Shown: positions 10,300 to 22,500 of the stretch, in pieces
Layout of the letters: the number at the start of each line of letters is the position of its first letter
How positions within the stretch are numbered: position 1 is the first letter of the stretch
NCBI RefSeq assembly: GCF_000315625.1
Contig: NW_005434672.1
Location: forward strand, 426,006 to 490,005
Reading direction: 5' to 3'
Source: Guillardia theta CCMP2712
Taxonomy: Eukaryota > Protista > Cryptophyta
Length of the DNA: 64,000 nucleotides
The notes under the pieces: generated by a model
What the model was told of the DNA's origin: nothing
What the model saw: only the letters and a program-made list of their open reading frames with translations
Databases searched by the model: none
Position numbers and translations under genes: made by a program

Positions 10300-12520
10300 C
10301 ACAAGATGAACACCGTGGCTCACCAAATTGGCGATGAAGGCGGCAGAAGTCTCATGTTGACTTCCTCGCTGCATGTTTGTCTTCTCTCCCTCAAGAACTT
10401 CTCCGACGGCGTGCAACAACCTCTCTCTCAAAAGACCTGCATCAACCTCACTCGCCCCTCTTGCCCCTCCCTCCTCCCTCTCTGATTCTCAATCGTGCTG
10501 CCTCCTCGTGCTGCCTCCTCCTCCTCCTCGTGTGCTCCTCCTTCCTCTTCCTCCTCTTCCTCCTCCTCCTGCTCGTGCTCTTCCTCCCTCTTCCTTCTCC
10601 TCCCCCTCCTCGTCATTCTTCTTCCTCCTCCATAACCCCCTCCTCGCTCTCCCCCCCTGCTTCTCCTTACATCTCATCTCCACCTCAACCCCAAGTAACA
10701 AGAGGATAGAATCGTCTCACCCATGTCCTTGGCTCGGCTCTCAGGGTCAGTTGCTCTCAGCAGGGGGGACGTGCATCCTAACGAGCTGGGGGGGAGAGGA
10801 TCGATGTACCCAGCAGAGGAGAAGTACATCTCCCCCCGAGATAAAAACTTCCGTCCCCCTCCCCTCTCTCCTCCCCAGCTTCCATTCTCCTTCGTAGACG
10901 CCCCCGTAGTCATATCTCATCGCTCCCTTCCCATGCCGCAGGTCCAGGAAGAACTCCCCGCTGTAGATGCCGTTTCCTCCCGATAAGTGTACTCTACATC
11001 GCTCACGTACTTTCCCATCCCCTCCCTCCTCCCGCACACCCACTCCCCCTCGTAGCTGCTCCCCGCACTCCATGCTGTGGAGTCGGTATGGCAAGTCCAC
11101 AACCCCTTCCCATGGTACATGTCCTCATCAAACTCCCCAACGTAGCTCTCGAAGGGTGTGAGTACGAAGGGGAGTTCGTGCATGGACCGGCAGCACCCCA
11201 CACCCGGGGAGCTTCGCGCTGACCCCGTAGCACTTCGCTTCCTCGCTCTCGGGGTCCAGCCCAGGAGGATGAAGACCGTAGAGGAGCTTGCCGTATCCTC
11301 CAAACTTCCCCGCTACAAACTCCCCCTCGTACTTGAGATTCCTTTCTGCCAATTCCAGCGTCCCCCTCCCGTAGTAGAGCGACTGGTAGAACTCCCCCGA
11401 GTAGCTCTCCTTCTCCGTGACTCGGCATTCTGGCCCGTGCAGTATCCCATTCCGGTGCACGCCTGACTCGAGCACCTTCCCGTTCCTCCGCTCGAAGGAA
11501 AAGGACGCGGAATCGAACGTTGTTGTGCAGACTTTCCCGTCCCTGAATGTGAAGCTTTCCTCGCCATGCGACTCATTCATCCTGAACTCTCCTTCGTACA
11601 CATCACCGTTGGCAAACGTTCGTCTCCCCACGCATTTCCCATGCTCGAAGGTCGCCTCCAACATGCCTCCATCGGCAAACAGCACGTTCCCTTTACCGTC
11701 GGGCACACCAGCGTTGAAAGACCCGTAATACACATCACCATCAGTCAGCGAAGCCAGTCCTTTCCCTGCTCCCTCCTCTCCTCTCGACCCCAACTTGTCC
11801 TTTCCTCCCTCCGCAAACGTTCCTTCGTACCAGTCCCCCCACCTGCTGCGGTATACTCCCTTCCCATGAAAGTGATCGCGCTGCCAGACTCCTTGGTACT
11901 CGTCACCATCGGGAAACAGCAGCACCCCCTCCCCTTCCAGCCTCCCCTTCCTCACGCTGCCGCTGTACACGCTGCCATTCTTGAACTCATGGTTCGAGAT
12001 GATGGTCGTGTCCTTCTGCCACTTCTCCTCAAACGACGACCCGTTGGGAAACCAGTACTTGCCCTTGCCGTGGAACATATCCTTGGAGTGCTGCCCTTGG
12101 TACTTGGATCCGTTGGCGAAGAAGTAGGTTCCCTTGATAAAGTTTCCCTTAGTCTCGGACTCTCTCTTCCCATAGCTCATCGTCCCCTCATACCGATCGC
12201 CGGTGTCATAATACATAATTCTCTTTCCGGTCGGATGGAACAGGTGAAACTGCCCTTGCCATCGACCAATACATTTCTATCAAAATTATGCCCGTTCATG
12301 GCTTTAGGTCAGTGTCCTTGTTGCCTTACTAGTATGTGATAACTGAAGATACAGGTATTTATTGGCTGATCTATAGAGCGAATCATACTGCAGCTTGTGG
12401 TAAACTGTTTCCAGGTATACTTGCTGCAAGTGATACCTATACATTCACCTTCTTTTCGTCAAGCTCTTGCCGGAGAGGTCAAAGCCAATATGAACGATTC
12501 CGCAAGCTTTTCTGCTAGCG
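10300..12520 (-). CDS. MORN-repeat protein (multi-exon; both ends uncertain)
   Basis: Many G-x-Y-x-G-x-W/F-xx-G/D-xx-HG-x-G units (GDEYQGVWQRDHFHGKG, GGVYEGEWKLGRREGRG). A GTAAG..TAG intron at 12329-12277 shows the gene continues upstream. Confidence 0.85.
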
Positions 12521-12914
12521 AGTACTGAAGGACCATGATACCCAGCAGGCACTCGATGAAAAGGGTCAGCATGTGGGAGACTCAGGTGTGAACACTTGGA
12601 GGAAGTGGAATGGAGGACCGTGAATCAGTCTGAATGATGAAACAGGATAAACAGGATCACACAGTATTCGTAAAGGAGGCGTGCAAAACAGTGCCGCCGG
12701 AAACACCGCTGGTCCGTTGGTGCGATCAGTGTAAGGGCTGGATGGAAGATAGGAGGCAATTCAAGACACGTATATGAGGTAAATTAACCTCAGTGCTGGA
12801 AGGGTCTGTGGGATCAATGACATAGCGGCTCTGGTGAGGTATAAACGAGCTGGCAATCAGCATGTAGGAAGAATAGCCTCAGGGTTACCGACTGAGCTAC
12901 CTGATTCTAAAATC

Positions 12915-15900
12915 TTACCACCAACGATTCACACCACAAATCACCGAGGCTCCCAAGTGCACCTCCTTGCTGCCTGGGTGCAGCTCCATAGCCTTGAGGA
13001 TTGCTTCCATCCCACCGAGCCTCGCTATCTTGACCTTGTTGTCGTCATTGACGGCGAGCTTCAGTTAGTGCCCAGCAGCCCTGCTCTTGCACCTCCTTGC
13101 TGCCTGGGTGCAGCTCCATAGCCTTGAGGATTGCTTCCATCCCACCGAGCCTCGCTATCTTGACCATGTTGTCGGCATTGACGGCGAGGTTCAGTAGTGC
13201 CCCGCAGCCCTGCTCTTGCACCTCCTTGCTGCCTGGGTGCAGCTCCATAGCCTTGAGGATTGCTTCCATCCCACCGAGCCTCGCTATCTTGACCATGTTG
13301 TCGTCATTGCCAGCGAGCTTCAGCAGTGCCCCGCAGCCCTGCTCTTGCATCTCCTTGCTGCCTGGGTGCAGCTCCATAGCCTTGAGGATTGCTTCCATCC
13401 CACCGAGCCTCGCTATCTTGACCATGTTGTCGGCATTGCCAGCGAGGTTCAGTAGTGCCCCGCAGCCCTGCTCTTGCACCTCCTTGCTGCCTGGGTGCAG
13501 CTCCATAGCCTTGAGGATTGCTTCCATCCCACCGAGCCTCGCTATCTTGACCATGTTGTCGTCATTGAAGGCGAGGTTCAGTAGTGCCCAGCAGCCCTGC
13601 TCTTGCACCTCCTTGCTGCCTGGGTGCAGCTCCATAGCCTTGAGGATTGCTTCCATCCCACCGAGCCTCGCTATCTTGACCTTGTTGTCGGCATTGAGGG
13701 CAAGGTTCCCCAGTGCCCAGCAGCCCTGCTCTTGCACCTCCTTGCTGCCTGGGTGCAGCTCCATAGCCTTGAGGATTGCTTCCATCCCACCGAGCCTCGC
13801 TATCTTGACCATGTTGTCGTCATTGACGGCGAGCTTCAGTTAGTGCCCAGCAGCCGTGCTGTTGCACCTCCTTGCTGCCTGGGTGCAGCTCCATAGCCTT
13901 GAGGATTGCTTCCATCCCACCGAGCCTCGCTATCTTGACCATGTTGTCGGCATTGAAGGCGAGGTTCAGTAGTGCCCAGCAGCCCTGCTCTTGCACCTCC
14001 TTGCTGCCTGGGTGCAGCTCCATAGCCTTGAGGATTGCTTCCATCCCACCGAGCCTCGCTATCTTGACCATGTTGTCGGCATTGCCAGCGAGGTTCCCCA
14101 GTGCCCCGCAGCCGTGCTCTTGCATCTTCTTGCTGCCTGGGTGCAGCTCCATAGCCTTGAGGATTGCTTCCATCCCACCGAGCCTCGCTATCTTGACCAT
14201 GTTGTCGTCATTGCCAGCGAGGTTCAGCAGTGCCAGCAGCCCTGCTCTTGCACCTCCTTGCTGCCTGGGTGCAGCTCCATAGCCTTGAGGATTGCTTCCA
14301 TCCCACCGAGCCTCGCTATCTTGACCATGTTGTCGGCATTGAAGGCGAGGTTCAGTAGTGCCCAGCAGCCCTGCTCTTGCACCTCCTTGCTGCCTGGGTG
14401 CAGCTCCATAGCCTTGAGGATTGCTTCCATCCCACCGAGCCTCGCTATCTTGACCATGTTGTCGGCATTGAGGGCAAGGTTCAGTAGTGCCCAGCAGCCC
14501 TGCTCTTGCACCTCCTTGCTGCCTGGGTGCAGCTCCATAGCCTTGAGGATTGCTTCCATCCCACCGAGCCTCGCTATCTTGACCTTGTTGTCGTCATTGC
14601 CAGCGAGCTTCCCCAGTGCCCCGCAGCCCTTCTCTTGCACCTCCTTGCTGCCTGGGGCCAGCTCCATAGCCTTGAGGATTGCTTCCATCCCACCGAGCCT
14701 CGCTATCTTGACCATGTTGTCGGCATTGACGGCGAGGTTCAGCAGTGCCCCGCAGCCGTGCTGTTGCACCTCCTTGCTGCCTGGGTGCAGCTCCATAGCC
14801 TTGAGGATTGCTTCCATCCCACCGAGCCTCGCTATCTTGACCATGTTGTCGGCATTGCCAGCGAGGTTCAGCAGCGCCCCGCAGCCCTGCTCTTGCACCT
14901 CCTTGCTGCCTGGGTGCAGCTCCATAGCCTTGAGGATTGCTTCCATCCCACCGAGCTCGCTATCTTGACCATGTGTCGGCATTGCCAGCGAGGTTCCCCA
15001 GTGCCCAGCAGCCGCGCTCTTGCACCTCCTTGCTGCCTGGGTGCAGCTCCATAGCCTTGAGGATTGCTTCCATCCCACCGAGCCTCGCTATCTTGACCAT
15101 GTTGTCGTCATTGCCAGCGAGCTTCCCCAGTGCCCCGCAGCCCTTCTCTTGCACCTCCTTGCTGCCTGGGTGCAGCTCCATAGCCTTGAGGATTGCTTCC
15201 ATCCCACCGAGCCTCGCTATCTTGACCATGTTGTCGGCATTGAAGGCGAGGTTCAGTAGTGCCCAGCAGCCCTGCTCTTGCACCTCCTTGCTGCCTGGGT
15301 GCAGCTCCATAGCCTTGAGGATTGCTTCCATCCCACCGAGCCTCGCTATCTTGACCATGTTGTCGGCATTGACGGCGAGGTTCAGCAGTGCCCCGCAGCC
15401 GTGCTGTTGCACCTCCTTGCTGCCTGGGTGCAGCTCCATAGCCTTGAGGATTGCTTCCATCCCACCGAGCCTGGCTATCTTGACCATGTTGTCGTCATTG
15501 CCAGCGAGGTTCAGCAGCGCCCCGCAGCCGCGCTCTTGCACCTCCTTGCTGCCTGGGTGCAGCTCCATAGCCTTGAGGATTGCTTCCATCCCACCGAGCC
15601 TCGCTATCTTGACCATGTTGTCGGCATTGCCAGCGAGGTTCCCCAGTGCCCCGCAGCCCTGCTCTTGCACCTCCTTGCTGCCTGGGTGCAGCTCCATAGC
15701 CTTGAGGATTGCTTCCATCCCACCGAGCCTCGCTATCTTGACCATGTTGTCGTCATTGCCAGCGAGCTTCAGCAGTGCCCGCAACCCTGCTGTTGCACCT
15801 CCTTGCTGCCTGGGTGCAGCTCCATAGCCTTGAGGAATGCTTCCTTCCCACCGAACCCTGCTATCTTGACCATGTTGTCCGCATTGCCAGCGAGGTTCAG

Positions 15901-18333
15901 TAGTGCCCAGCAGCCCTTCTCTTGCACCTCCTTGCTGCCTGGGTGCAGCTCCATAGCCTTGAGGATTGCTTCCATCCCACCGAGCCTCGCTATCTTGACC
16001 TTGTTGTCGGCATTGAGGGCAAGGTTCAGTAGTGCCCAGCAGCCGTGCTCTTGCACCTCCTTGCTGCCTGGGTGCAGCTCCATAGCCTTGAGGATTGCTT
16101 CCATCCCACCGAGCCTCGCTATCTTGACCATGTTGTCGTCATTGAGGGCAAGGTTCCCCAGTGCCCAGCAGCCGCAAAATTGCACCTCCTTGCTGCCTGG
16201 GTGCAGCTCCATAGCCTTGAGGATTGCTTCCATCCCACCGAGCCTCGCTATCTTGACCATGTTGTCGGCATTGACGGCGAGGTTCAGCAGTGCCCCGCAG
16301 CCGTGCTGTTGCACCTCCTTGCTGCCTGGGTGCAGCTCCATAGCCTTGAGGATTGCTTCCATCCCACCGAGCCTCGCTATCTTGACCATGTTGTCGTCAT
16401 TGCCAGCGAGCTTCCCCAGTGCCCCGCAGCCCTTCTCTTGCACCTCCTTGCTGCCTGGGTGCAGCTCCATAGCCTTGAGGATTGCTTCCATCCCACCGAG
16501 CCTCGCTATCTTGACCTTGTTGTCGTCACTGCCAGCGATGAACAGTAGTGCCCCGCAGCCCTGCTCTTGCACCTCCTTGCTGCCTGGGTGCAGCTCCATA
16601 GCCTTGAGGATTGCTTCCATCCCACCGAGCCTCGCTATCTTGACCATGTTGTCGTCATTGCCAGCGAGGTTCAGTAGTGCCCCGCAGCCCTGCTCTTGCA
16701 CCTCCTTGCTGCCTGGGTGCAGCTCCATAGCCTTGAGGATTGCTTCCATCCCACCGAGCCTCGCTATCTTGACCTTGTTGTCGTCATTGAAGGCAAGGTT
16801 CCCCAGTGCCCCGCAGCCCTGCTCTTGCACCTCCTTGCTGCCTGGGTGCAGCTCCATAGCCTTGAGGATTGCTTCCATCCCACCGAGCCTCGCTATCTTG
16901 ACCTTGTTGTCGTCATTGCCAGCGAGGTTCAGTAGTGCCCCGCAGCCCTGCTCTTGCACCTCCTTGCTGCCTGGGTGCAGCTCCATAGCCTTGAGGATTG
17001 CTTCCATCCCACCGAGCCTCGCTATCTTGACTTTGTTGTCGGCATTGAGGGCAAGGTTCAGCAGCGCCCCGCAGCCGTGCTCTTGCACCTCCTTGCTGCC
17101 TGGGTGCAGCTCCATAGCCTTGAGGATTGCTTCCATCCCACCGAGCCTCGCTATCTTGACCATGTTGTCGGCATTGACGGCAAGAATTCGCATTGTCTCA
17201 CACCCTTGCTTTTGAATACCTTCATGTTTACGATGCTTTTTCATCTCGTGTACCAGAGCAGCTACGTCGTGGTGGAGTTTTATGGATGCGAACAGGACTG
17301 CTGCTAGAATTATTGCCAAAAAACAAAGTATTGCTGCCGAAAAAGCATTGCTTTTTACAAAGCATTGCTGCCCAGAAAGCCTAGCTGCCAGCCTGGCTAC
17401 CAGCAGGACCAAAACAAACCACAAAGTTTGAGTCCACGATCCCAGCAAAAGCAGATATGACCGGATGCTCAATGGATTCCTCGCTTGTTCAAGCTCGCCC
17501 TCCTCGCCCATGATCTGCTTCAAATGCACCACATCCGGGAACCCGCTTTTCTCAAGCAAAGAGGTTTCCTTCGGATCGATGATATTCTTTGAAGTAGAAA
17601 CTACCTCGAACGTGCTAAGAGGGGGTAGAAGCACTTCATACTCGCTATCGGTACCCTGAAAAAGACTGAAGCTCTCGATCCAGTAGCCATGCAAGACATC
17701 GATTATGAAGATGGTGCGCGGTCCTGCGTTGATCCCGCAGAAGTTCACACGTGTCATCACCTGTGGCTCCTTACTTGTGGATTTGTACTCATACCACATC
17801 AGTTTTCGCCCTGTCTTGAAATGGCTGGTCGGATTGTGATGGTCTGGCGAGGGATAGACCCACTTGACTCCCCGTCGAGCTTCACCCTTGTACTTGAACC
17901 TTTGGGGCAACGCTCTCAGGGCCTCTCGTAAAAACTTGATGTAGGGCAGACACGCACCAAGTGCCGGTGAGATACTGCGACCACCTCCCACCTGGCGACG
18001 ATCACGGTTGAACATCTCACGGTTGATGATTGCAAAGACCGGAGGGTCACTCAGCGTGTATACGTGGATGCACACGGCAAAGTCGATGCGGTAAGATTGG
18101 GGCAGGTTGAAGTGTTGCGGGTCGTGAAGCACCTCCTGCCACTCAGAGCTCTTGGACTTCACCACAAACGTCAAGATGTCCATGTCGATCTCAGGAAAGC
18201 GCTCCAGAGGTTGTACAGCATCCAAGAGCGTGGCAGGAAGCTCAGTCTCTTCCATCGCCTTCGACAGGGATCGCATCCAGCCATAGTCAATGCTTGGCGC
18301 CCCGTCGGATTCTGCGAAGTCAGGCGTGGCCAT
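12915..18333 (-). CDS. Mono-ADP-ribosyltransferase (R-S-E class) - hydrophobic hairpin - ~33 hypervariable armadillo repeats; array carries frameshifts (real or assembly error)
   Basis: ART motifs: IHVYT, RRGV, KSTS, SEYEVLLPPLSTFEV. Two hydrophobic stretches at ~17270-17460. Then 43-aa ARM units EVQxxGCxALxxLAxNxDNxVKIARLGGMEAILKAMELHPGSK. Single-base indels at ~15780, ~14975, ~14957, ~14233, ~13840 and ~13065. Confidence 0.88.
12957..17215 (-). repeat. Coding tandem array of ~33 x 129-bp units
   Basis: Constant block (gcctcgctatcttgacc...gctccatagccttgaggattgcttccatcccacc) recurs every 129 bp. For example, equivalent positions 13061 and 13836 are 775 bp apart = 6 units + 1 inserted base. 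Confidence 0.97.
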
Positions 18334-18962
18334 CGTTTCCTGTCGCAAAGAATCACGTCTGTCAGATGGTGCAGGGTGTTGAGCTGACAGCTGCTACCTT
18401 GTATCATGCGCATAGCCACCGAGCAGCAAGCGGCATCAGCTTGCTCTCAAGATACTTGAACCAGAATCTCACAAGCCGCGTCAGAATCTCAGCACCAACA
18501 ATCACAAGAGAACGATCGAAACATTCCACAGTAACCAGCTTCAAAAGAGTCTCAACACTTAGCTCGTCATCGAAACTATCCAAAAGACCCAAGAAAAATC
18601 TCAATACTCTTGTAGGATCATATTTCCCAATCATATTCAAACTATCATATTCGAACTCCCAACGCTCATTTCAACAAGATCAACAAGATCAACATAAAAA
18701 TTCGCACGATCATGTACTCCAAGACTCTTGAGAAAGACAACATCCTCCTCATACTTGTAAGTAGACTACTACCTCCGAGGCTTCACTCCGCATCAACCAG
18801 GCCATGGATGCAGTGCGCTGGCGTCTTATCCACCAAAAAGCACCGCAACTGACTCGACTACCGGTGTATTGGATACATCCGATAAAAACTACCCCACCCC
18901 TAAAGAGTCAATCGACCCTTCAACTACAACCCCGACAACTCGACCACCCATGCTTGGGTGGT

Positions 18963-19126
18963 CCAAAACTGGGCATGTGCGGGCTGTATGAGGAGCTTAC
19001 AAATTCAATGTGACGGATTCCGTCGGGATCAACGGTTTGTAAGCTCCTCATACGGACGGACCAAAACTGGGCATGTGCGGGCTGTATGAGGGGCTTGCAA
19101 ACCGTAGATCCCGACGGAATCCGTCA
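18963..19126. repeat. Nested direct + inverted repeat (fold-back) structure
   Basis: 30-bp direct repeat ccaaaactgggcatgtgcgggctgtatgag at 18963 and 19061. 43-bp inverted repeat 19011-19053 vs 19084-19126 (3 mismatches). 18986-19003 also pairs with 19036-19053. Confidence 0.9.
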
Positions 19127-19599: not shown

Positions 19600-22500
19600 T
19601 AGCATTCACAAGATTGAAATCACGAATCATTTTCCTTAACTCTGGAGCCGGAGTGCGAAATTCACGCGTAGACAACCAAGAATCATCCGATGATCGGACT
19701 TGTCATATCCGAGGCTTTCCAACGAACCGGGTACTGCACACGATTTCCGACTTTCCCGCGACGAGCCAAAATACGATCGACTTCAAAATACTGTCCATCG
19801 CGTTGAACCAAAGGCAACGGTGGTGGTTCAATTTCATCCAGGGACACATCTCGAAAATAGTAAGGACGACGTTTCGCCACGTTGAAAACTGTTTTCTTCA
19901 TGTGTTGAAAACGCGGTGTAAACTCCAAGCGCACAGAGTTATCTGAAACTTTCTCTTGTATCTTGAAAGGTCCAATGAAACGAATTTTCATCTTGCCCAT
20001 GGACTGCCATGCAACTTCAAATCGCGTGTCGACAACATAACGAAGTCGCACGCTCCAGGCGCAGCAAGTAAAAATCCTAATCGAGAGGCGCACGACGCTG
20101 CCGCTGCTCATGAGACGAAGCAGAAGCATCCTGACGCGTGCGATGCTGTTCATATGTCTGAAGCAACTGACGGAGCGCCGGTGTACGCGAGAGATGGGCA
20201 ACAGGTTCCCAAGTGTCGTCGGCGGAGGAAAATCCCTTCCAACGAACCAGATATTGCTTCGCACCATTACGTTGATCGGATGATTGATGATGCGAGCCAC
20301 TTCGCCGCCGAATCCAGGCACAGCCTGGTTGGGAAACCACAGGCTGTTGCAAATGATCTTTCCGAAGTTCCTGCGCACATGGGGGCGTAGGAACTTGGCA
20401 TTAAAAACATCTTGATCCGAGGCCATCCGAAGTTCGGGTCAGTTCCTGATGACGTCCGTCCAATTCGTCCGGCGTCGTCCCTACCGACTTCCTGCGACGC
20501 TCCAGGAGGAGCTCGCTAAAACGATCGACTTCTTGTTGGCACGTGGCATCATTGAACGGAACAATGATGTCATGTGGCAGAGTCCCGTCATCTTTGTTCG
20601 CAAAGGTCTTTCCTCTGAAGGAGTCCCTCAATTTCGTTTTTGTATTGATTATCGAGGAGCCTGGCAACACAATCACCTCCTCGACGACAGTTTTCCGCCT
20701 AACGGATCGGGCGGGTGCTCTCGCAGCGTACTCAGTCCAGTACGGATACCCTATCATTACTTCAGCAAGCTAGACATGGCCTCTGGGTTCTGGCAGCTGG
20801 CTCTCACTCCTGACAACTCTCAATACACTGGGTTTGTTACTGAACAAGGATCCTACCAATTCCGCGCTCTGCCCTTTGGTCTGAAAACGGCCACACTGAG
20901 CTGTTCTCACAGGGCATTCTCGCAGGTATGGCCAATGTCTTAGTCTACGTCGATGATGTCTTACTCTTCTCCATGGGTAATCCTCGTTCACCGTGGCACC
21001 TACAGCAGGTGCGTCTCCTACTGGAGCGCCTCCGCCACCACCCTGACCAGGTCAGAGTCTTCGTTAAACGGAGCAAGTGTGTGTTTCTTCAGACGCAGAT
21101 CAGTTTTCTCGGATACACTTTGAATGCTCGAGCAGAGACGCGTCTACTTCCTTCTCGCCGCCCGCTTCGCTAGCAAGTTGGTGATTTGGTCTGGATCGAC
21201 GCGCGTTTATTCAATCAGCAGTTTGAAATTCGCAAATTTCGAGATCCGATACATTGCGGAGTCCTTTCCCCGGTGATCACCGAGGTTTGCAACAACAACA
21301 ATTATCGAGCCGGCGTGTTCGCCAGCGCTTCCCTCGCAAGGACAACGTCATACTGCCCCCGCGAGACAGGCCCAGTGGCTGGATTGGTAGTTCGTCTACC
21401 GTTCAGAACATCGGAAAAATCCTCGAGTAGCTCCTGCAAGGCCTGAGCTGCGAGCGGCGAGTCCGACGAGGCGACCTGAGAGACCAACGAACTGGTAGAA
21501 ACAGGCGACTCCGCGAGGAGACGGTCGCCATGACCCAGGGCATCATGATAGTATCCTCAGGTGGAGGAGGCTGACTGAGCGTGTTCCAGTCCGCATGCCA
21601 GGGAAAGATCAACTTTGAACACTGGGCTTGCCGCATAGCCTCGATGTCCAGGGCCACAGTTGTAACAACGGATGGTATTGGTCGATGTGCGTGGGGACGA
21701 GGAGTCTCCCGCACCCCTGGCCGGCGTCCTGCCGAGCAGCACGGCGCTCTTTGAAGGCCGAATCCTGGCCGGGGGCAGAAGGACGACTCTTGCGATCATT
21801 GGAAGTAGAGGAGCGATTGCCCACCAGCCACGGAGTAGAGCTGCCGGTCACTGGGGATCTGCTCCCGTCGAATGGTCTTTGGTTCTGGTCTGATTGTCGA
21901 TCTTGAGCGCGTACTCCCTGAGCTGACGGAACTGAGTCAACATCATCCGAACGCTGTAAAGTCAGGGCCCACTGATTTACTGAGAGTAGAGCAGTCATAT
22001 GCGATCGGACACCATTAATGAACCGTTTGCAGACCCCCCGGACCAGTGAGGACGTCGCAAATAATTTACCATCCGGAAGGAGCTGAAGTTGCTCGATTAA
22101 TGTCACGAATTTCCTCCGAAAACGTGTCACAGTGTCCCAATCCGATGGCATGCGGCGAAAGGTCTCTGGCGGGTACTTGGCCACGAAGTGTTGGCGGACG
22201 GGAGCATCCAGCCTCCGTAAATCGAGGGTATGGACAACCCAATTAGCTCGGGGAATACCATAGACCGCAAAGGAGTACTGAATGGTTTGAACCCATGTCA
22301 GGACATTGTTGGCGCTAGTTTGGCGGGCAGTATCCAACTTGGGGAGATTGCGCAACTTAGCAAGCAATTGAGCGGCTGATCAGCCAGAGAGACCAGCGGA
22401 GGACCGTCACGCGAGGAGATGGGGGGCGGTCCAGGCTTCAAAGCTTGAGAGCGGCGGGCGGGACCGCCGCAGAGGAGGCGGGACCTTCGCCGAGAGCACT

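Follow-up and report, generated by a model that had tools for sequence, protein, structure and literature searches.

What kind of gene joins a predicted ADP-ribosylating enzyme to dozens of nearly identical armadillo repeats, and is its array still read to the end? The question is raised by the reverse strand of a 64,000-nt stretch of the Guillardia theta CCMP2712 genome (contig NW_005434672.1, positions 426,006 to 490,005; this whole stretch is referred to as the window). Positions 18333 to 12915 of the window were originally predicted to encode a membrane-anchored ADP-ribosyltransferase (ART) fused to about 33 armadillo (ARM) units, a candidate recognition and effector system. Comparison of the sequence with its relatives suggests that the locus may encode a recognition array that diversifies and acts through an ADP-ribosylating enzyme at a membrane, a reading whose chances of being right and of being wrong are judged to be about equal.

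The N-terminal part of the product, starting with ATG 18333, is a predicted ART of the R-S-ExE type (Table 1). Residues 54-249 match the Pfam ART family PF01129 with 38.4 bits (curated cut-off 22.3; E=1.1e-9), and 424 homologues were retrieved by phmmer from the full library. In a 57-homologue alignment (A1) the putative catalytic residue R154 is invariant, and S185, E231 and E233 are each conserved in at least 90% of the sequences. The AlphaFold2 (AF2) model of the domain, built on this 57-sequence alignment, has a predicted local distance difference test score (pLDDT) of 93 and a predicted template modelling score (pTM) of 0.90. A search of the PDB by sequence produced only sub-threshold matches to XopAI, which is why a fold search was needed. 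Foldseek placed the model with Vis, HopU1, XopAI, C3, Certhrax, ART2.2 and VIP2 (probability 1.0, E 3e-10 to 1e-7), and sequence identity to the solved structures is below 20%. The ExE motif is characteristic of arginine-modifying enzymes, such as iota, C2 and ART1/2, as opposed to the QxE motif of C3. Judging from this motif, the protein is probably an arginine-specific mono-ADP-ribosyltransferase. The single public protein model that was found for the locus (P0001, NCBI) comprises 192 aa (17758-18333, minus strand) and covers the ART part only; a search of the contig record for this model found nothing. Since the model ends at residue 192, the combination of ART, hairpin and ARM array is invisible in the current annotation.

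The ART domain is followed by two hydrophobic segments, and a single half unit separates this hairpin from the 33 full ARM units. If both segments are transmembrane helices, the ART domain and the ARM array should both face the cytosol. No signal peptide was found in the ART protein at ATG 18333, and an in-frame TGA located 5' of this codon in the spliced mRNA indicates that no N-terminal extension or signal peptide is hidden upstream. The Pfam family, the fold and the R/S-T-S/E-x-E motifs are shared with other R-S-E mono-ARTs, including vertebrate ART1-5, Vis, HopU1, XopAI, C3 and iota/VIP2, but unlike these the algal protein appears to reside inside the cell, tethered to a membrane, and continues into a giant array of repeats. 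The nearest solved folds belong to bacterial ART toxins and type III effectors, which would agree with an exported toxin directed at competitors, grazers or symbionts, in whose cells the ARM array would provide targeting. However, the absence of a signal peptide, the upstream stop that rules out a hidden leader, and the internal transmembrane hairpin, which argues for a resident membrane protein, make such a toxin very improbable.

The repeat array was delineated by several methods. Tandem Repeats Finder (TRF) reports it at 12958-17181 with a period of 129, 32.8 copies, 93% matches and a score of 7212, and the alignment of units resolves 33 of them (u01 to u33), the last being degenerate and carrying the codon TAA 12917-12915 in the unit frame. 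The array matches the Pfam families Arm (E=1.8e-27) and ARM_LRRK2 (E=6.9e-35). The AF2 model of eight units (pLDDT 95.8) forms a canonical ARM solenoid with three helices per 43-aa unit, and Foldseek aligns it with the designed ARM protein 4rv1 (TM-score 0.84) as well as with Vac8, beta-catenin and the designed armadillo repeat proteins (ArmRPs) 5mfm and 6s9o. The layout originally proposed is thus borne out with regard to the ART domain with its R-S-ExE triad (the EYE motif lies at 17643-17635, where it had been placed), the two hydrophobic segments, the approximately 33 near-identical ARM units and the restriction of variation to a few sites. The long open reading frames (ORFs) that run across the array on the plus strand match no Pfam family above threshold and were rejected as genes, being antisense artefacts of the GC-rich repeat.

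Differences among the units are distributed very unevenly. Within their first 80 nt the units show essentially no variation, synonymous sites included, and the differences are confined to the last ~50 nt. Amino acid variation is found at eight unit positions, 1, 28, 29, 32, 35, 36, 39 and 41, mostly in helix 3, and each of them has few alleles; 26 distinct residue combinations occur at these positions among 32 units. According to Nei-Gojobori estimates of non-synonymous (dN) and synonymous (dS) divergence, the constant codons have a dS of 0.007 and a dN of 0.009. The eight variable codons have a dN of 0.32 and a dS of 0.036, values to be read bearing in mind that these codons were picked post hoc and that recombination was unmodelled, while the nine framework codons interleaved with them show the opposite regime (dN 0.011, dS 0.29). 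In the AF2 model helix 3 corresponds to unit positions 24-37, and the spacing of positions 28, 29, 32, 35 and 36 (i, i+1, i+4, i+7, i+8) places them on one face of this helix. In ARM proteins helix 3 lines the ligand groove. The same unit positions vary in the paralogous arrays of the genome and in a metagenomic ART-ARM orthologue (P0014). The close proximity of codons under opposite regimes and the linkage of old synonymous variants to particular alleles would agree with cassettes that were maintained for a long time and shuffled on a homogenised backbone.

To place the gene among its relatives, the genome assembly (87,145,349 bp in 669 contigs) was searched, and the paralogues looked for on the basis of the original prediction were found. 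The genome contains 11 PF01129 loci, this gene included. At six of them an ART is followed by ankyrin (ANK) arrays composed of 105-bp units, four being located on contig C97 and one each on C64 and C19, and on contigs C35 and C15 a C-terminal ART is preceded by WD40 arrays. ARM arrays of the same 129-bp design, with 64-71% DNA identity, are present in four clustered genes on contig C118 and also on contigs C207 and C14. The N-terminal domain of one C118 gene (L043) carries an HG...C motif and resembles the caspase-fold protease domain CHAT: the Pfam match is sub-threshold (E=0.002), and its language-model neighbours are nearly all CHAT (score 0.95). The N-terminal sequences of a second C118 gene and of the C207 gene are visibly similar to this domain; on C118 the CHAT-like head was seen in the two genes whose 5' end was covered. 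In the C14 ORF no recognisable head domain was found. A NOD NTPase (NACHT or NB-ARC) was found neither in the 854-aa product encoded here by the ATG frame nor in a WD40-ART product and the two ART-ANK products of C64 and C19; with no such domain in the scanned products, the locus was not classified as an NLR. PADLOC gave no matches for either head domain, ART or CHAT-like, and searches of the literature for work on Guillardia ARTs or ARM arrays with high internal conservation (HIC) were negative.

Some of these relatives deserve a separate description. The four ART genes clustered at ~150000-216000 of C97 (L036-L039, L008, L010-L012) each contain 105-bp ankyrin arrays with 8-18 copies and 84-88% matches. 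The C35 gene (L033:4642-9003, plus strand) has an open frame of 1454 aa comprising an N-terminal hydrophobic leader, Cys-rich modules similar to those of ephrin receptors and TNFR, a WD40 array with 126-bp units and the C-terminal ART; this architecture is receptor-like, and its ART is C-terminal where that of the ART-ARM gene is N-terminal. The four tandem genes at ~123000-168300 of C118 (L043, L029, L030, L021, L022, L028) carry arrays with 13-23 ARM units of 129 bp in each and 86-90% internal DNA matches, and a single frame-breaking spacing occurs in L022, the other arrays being open. The C14 array (L046:6939-9998, plus strand) consists of 132-bp (44-aa) units with two frame-breaking spacings; its frame crosses an out-of-frame stretch and it is possibly broken. 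On C207 the gene combining a CHAT-like domain with ARM repeats (L047:7315-9998, minus strand) lies close to a separate ankyrin HIC array of 105-bp units, which is encoded by the opposite strand (L047:1066-2298, plus strand). Directly 5' of this gene, on the same strand, an ORF has a sub-threshold match to the helicase C-terminal family UvrD_C_2 (E=0.0017) and may encode an NTPase-containing relative.

Outside this genome, orthologues of the ART domain with 40-57% identity are fused to ARM (P0014), ANK (P0004), TPR (P0027) and WW (P0173) repeats or domains, or to kinase/EGF/PARP combinations. The kinase-type orthologues include a protein from Picozoa, and another relative was found in Entosiphon; the clade to which this ART itself belongs consists of protist and metagenome proteins.

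Repeats with HIC and hypervariable sites on the binding surface have been described in fungi (PMC4986451, PMC12222747). The HIC-repeat NLRs of fungi (HET-E/HET-D/NWD, with ANK, TPR or WD repeats) resemble the present family in having repeats nearly identical at the DNA level, shuffled cassettes, few hypervariable surface positions, a multigene organisation and mixed heads and repeats (PMC4986451, PMC12222747). The repeats of the algal array likewise fall within the class defined by more than 85% repeat identity and concerted evolution, with 93% DNA matches over 33 units and a dS of 0.007 in the constant part. However, the fungal proteins contain a NACHT or NB-ARC NOD, and the fungal survey describes WD, ANK and TPR repeats (PMC4986451), whereas the algal gene combines ARM repeats with an R-S-E ART head and a membrane hairpin and has no NOD. 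TAL effectors (TALEs) and designed ArmRPs are also built of near-identical units with few specificity positions each, and ArmRPs bind extended peptides in a modular fashion. TALEs, in contrast, bind DNA and are not ARM proteins, and the eight variable positions of the algal array, with few alleles at each, give no evidence of a code in which one unit reads one residue. The proposed likeness to SARM1 holds as an analogy of logic only, namely, an ARM sensor or regulator combined with an NAD+-consuming output. The eight ARM repeats of SARM1 are diverged and are combined, in the reverse domain order, with a TIR NADase and with SAM domains for oligomerisation; no SAM or TIR domain was detected by Pfam in the algal protein. 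The bacterial conflict proteins in which a CHAT protease is combined with repeats (TPR-CHAT) are comparable to the C118 and C207 paralogues, with their CHAT-like head and HG...C motif, rather than to this gene.

A lack of transcription had been named as a finding that would refute the original prediction; the locus is transcribed and spliced. Contigs assembled from public sequencing runs were compared with the part of the gene that holds 11 ARM units. Contigs of two RNA runs (X1 and X2) are collinear with the genome over 17152-18341 and resume at 18400, the first 30 letters past the splice mapping to 18400-18429, while a DNA-like run (X3) is collinear across the gap. Since the 58 skipped nucleotides begin with GT and end with AG on the minus strand and are retained in X3, X1 and X2 represent spliced cDNA of this strand. 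RNA contigs of X1 and X2 also pass from the constant portion of one unit into the tail of u33 (mapping to 12928-12957) and continue for at least 255 nt more. The best RNA run contains 77% of the sampled words (31-mers) of the whole 5.6 kb, 23% being missing; together with the contigs through the u33 tail, this indicates that the array is transcribed to its end. The mRNA of the locus was found in runs from several studies. The substitution C>A at 16941, seen in all runs, was considered as RNA editing and rejected, as it is explained by sequences of other, W-type units of the array that map to this site.

In contrast to the single uninterrupted ORF of 1,806 aa at first envisaged for 18333-12915, the assembled sequence does not encode the array in one frame. 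The span is 5419 nt, which is not divisible by 3, and six 1-nt indels, all located within short homopolymers, divide the array among five ORF pieces that alternate between two frames (A, C and E versus B and D; Table 1). As assembled, the frame of ATG 18333 extends for 854 aa to TGA 15771-15769 and thus includes 10.7 units in addition to the ART domain and the hairpin. The codon TAA 12917-12915, which closes the degenerate u33, looks like the ancestral C-terminus. The common frame of pieces A, C and E led to B and D being considered as introns; this was rejected, as no evidence of splicing supports it and each break is an indel of one base. Accordingly, the locus may yield the 854-aa product only, or be a recently decayed copy, or be wrongly assembled at the indel bases.

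Table 1. Features of the ART-ARM locus, given in window coordinates
Feature	Position	Strand	Basis or remarks
5' untranslated region (UTR), exon; upstream limit approximate	18398..18802	(-)	Contigs of RNA runs X1 and X2, extending 377 and 403 letters past the splice
GT-AG intron of 58 nt in the 5' UTR, separated from ATG by 6 nt	18340..18397	(-)	AAG/gtagc...gacag/GAAACGATG
Predicted R-S-ExE ADP-ribosyltransferase domain, aa 1-290	17464..18333	(-)	Starts at ATG 18333; PF01129, AF2, Foldseek
R153-R154, R154 being the putative catalytic Arg	17872..17877	(-)	Invariant in alignment A1; RRG motif 17877-17869
S185-T-S187 motif	17773..17781	(-)	S185 conserved in at least 90%
E231-Y-E233 (ExE; ADP-ribosylating turn-turn (ARTT) loop)	17635..17643	(-)	E231 and E233 conserved in at least 90%
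Hydrophobic segment 1, aa 293-313	17395..17457	(-)	Kyte-Doolittle value above 1.6 (19-residue window)
Hydrophobic segment 2, aa 330-352; a stretch rich in K/R/H comes next	17278..17346	(-)	Kyte-Doolittle window up to 2.9
Tandem array of 33 ARM units, each with 129 bp (43 aa)	12915..17163	(-)	TRF, unit alignment, Pfam, AF2, Foldseek
Frameshift 1: 1-nt deletion in the G run of u11 (~15779), giving stop TGA 15771-15769	15769..15779	(-)	ORF, unit alignment
Two 1-nt deletions at the u17/u18 junction (end of u17, ~14972; u18, ~14956)	14956..14973	(-)	Unit spacing and alignment
1-nt deletion in the G run of u23 (~14234)	14233..14235	(-)	Unit alignment
1-nt A insertion in u26 (~13840), giving stop 13822-13820	13839..13841	(-)	Identical insertion in u32
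1-nt A insertion in u32 (~13065), giving stop 13047-13045	13064..13066	(-)	Identical insertion in u26
3' UTR, at least ~255 nt past the divergence point of u33	12700..12914	(-)	Contigs of RNA runs X1 and X2

The indels are somewhat more likely to be real than to be errors of assembly or consensus calling. In their favour, the paralogous arrays are cleaner and one insertion is common to two units of the same type; on the other side, no indel lies outside a homopolymer, the distal units show no other damage, and HIC arrays are hard to assemble (PMC12222747). In the ten paralogous arrays of the same assembly four frame-breaking spacings were counted in ~18 kb, versus five in the 4.26 kb of this array.

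If the indels are real, the locus could be a recently inactivated but still transcribed pseudogene, in which translation ends in u11 and the remaining 22 units are untranslated. The family as a whole may function, and the decay of this copy would perhaps reflect relaxed selection during long-term culture. This explanation is regarded as possible but unlikely. It agrees with the excess of indels (six of 1 nt in 4.26 kb) over the paralogues and with the six unique substitutions that u11 also carries, and the identical A insertion in u26 and u32 looks inherited rather than produced by random base-calling errors. However, the ART domain with its triad, the hairpin and the first ten units are intact, no extra degeneration is seen in the distal units, and the homopolymers in which all the indels lie are also sites where consensus errors arise. 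Moreover, the mRNA recurs in runs of several studies, and 854 aa with 10.7 ARM units correspond to an ARM domain of normal size.

Alternatively, the indels, and perhaps also the number and order of the units, are errors, and the true ORF comprises ~1,806 aa and ends at TAA 12917-12915. This is a real possibility, although it falls short of an even chance. HIC arrays are mis-reconstructed without long reads (PMC12222747), and besides their confinement to homopolymers the indels sum to -2 and leave pieces A, C and E in one frame. The signature of selection is uniform along the whole array, the units past the first frameshift showing the same dN/dS pattern as the proximal ones, and the array ends with a plausible native C-terminus and a stop in the unit frame. 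The 31-mers of the reference that are missing from the best RNA run point in the same direction, but such gaps would arise in any case, since rare variants are lost from Logan contigs. Random error, in turn, does not predict an identical insertion in two units, and hardly any frame breaks occur in other long arrays of this assembly. For the 121 nt around the u17/u18 deletions, five runs each contain 2/7 of the sampled words, which is uninformative for the same reason of dropped variants.

The interpretation of the locus as a diversifying recognition array with an ADP-ribosylating output is suggested by the swapping of heads and solenoids, the tandem clusters, the homogeneity of repeats at the DNA level and the focused surface variation, which are hallmarks of the fungal HIC NLRs. 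In such a system the protein would consist of a cytosolic N-terminal ART, a two-helix membrane hairpin and a cytosolic ARM solenoid. Concerted evolution would homogenise helices 1-2 as well as the framework of helix 3, with eight codons kept diverse, so that the array would present a fast-diversifying recognition surface with five variable positions in the usual ligand groove of ARM proteins. A protein captured by the array could be delivered to the membrane-tethered ART, or its binding could set the ART free. The gene would then be one of a genome-wide set combining an enzymatic head with an HIC solenoid, employed in biotic conflict or in self/non-self recognition. The gating of the ART by the array, as originally suggested, received no support; the predicted complex of units u01-u08 with the ART domain has a score of 0.00, which is not evidence either way. 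The role in defence or allorecognition and the TALE-like code that were proposed along with it are to be taken as suggestions.

Several observations weigh against this interpretation. The other ARTs of the genome are similar to this one only at the level of Pfam and profile comparisons, and the scanned products lack a NOD/NTPase switch. Across the entire variable region the dN/dS ratio (omega) is 0.81, which is below 1, and the ratio of ~9 at the eight hypervariable codons is inflated because these codons were chosen after the data had been seen. Finally, the density of frameshifts is ~6 times that of the ten paralogous arrays, which suggests that this copy may be non-functional.

An omega below 1 over the whole variable region would also agree with an ordinary cellular role, that is, a membrane-tethered regulatory ART whose ARM scaffold serves fixed endogenous partners, with neutral concerted evolution of a coding minisatellite and tolerated surface variation that would play no part in non-self recognition. 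Most ARM proteins act as scaffolds, Pfam detected no domain of the NOD, TIR or death type, and PADLOC was without matches. Against such a role stand the opposite regimes of interleaved codons within 50 nt (dN 0.32 and dS 0.036 versus dN 0.011 and dS 0.29), the variation of identical positions in paralogues and an orthologue, and the tandem clusters with swapped heads (ART, CHAT-like) and solenoids (ARM, ANK, WD40), which are typical of conflict genes and not of housekeeping genes; an ordinary role is therefore thought rather improbable.

A broader and more speculative proposal, held with low confidence, is that cryptophytes possess a NOD-less innate recognition repertoire in which heads for cell death or modification, R-S-E ART and CHAT-like, are combined with cassette-shuffled ARM, ANK and WD40 solenoids. 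The ARM arrays would function as evolvable peptide binders, and the distal out-of-frame units of this locus could serve as a silent reservoir of cassettes, through which recombination would re-programme the translated proximal array.

If the locus does encode a diversifying recognition array, the principle of near-identical repeats with hypervariable contacts, known from fungal NLRs and TALEs, would extend to an alga with a secondary plastid. It would involve the ARM repeat and an R-S-E ART output, both absent from the description given in the fungal survey, and would operate without a NOD switch. The genes would then constitute a testable candidate family for the recognition of viruses, parasites or self in algae, and their ARM units, with defined variable positions, a natural library for protein engineering.

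In the vicinity of the locus, a retrotransposon fragment encoding a Tf2-1-type integrase SH3 domain (PF24626, E=2e-9) is located at 19686-20426 on the minus strand, ~0.9 kb upstream of the 5' exon. The putative promoter contains an element at 18960-19126 resembling a miniature inverted-repeat transposable element, with 43-nt inverted arms (19011-19053 and 19084-19126) that are 93% complementary and with a 44-nt direct repeat. The downstream neighbour, at 11131-12216 on the minus strand, encodes a MORN-repeat protein (PF02493, E=2e-20).

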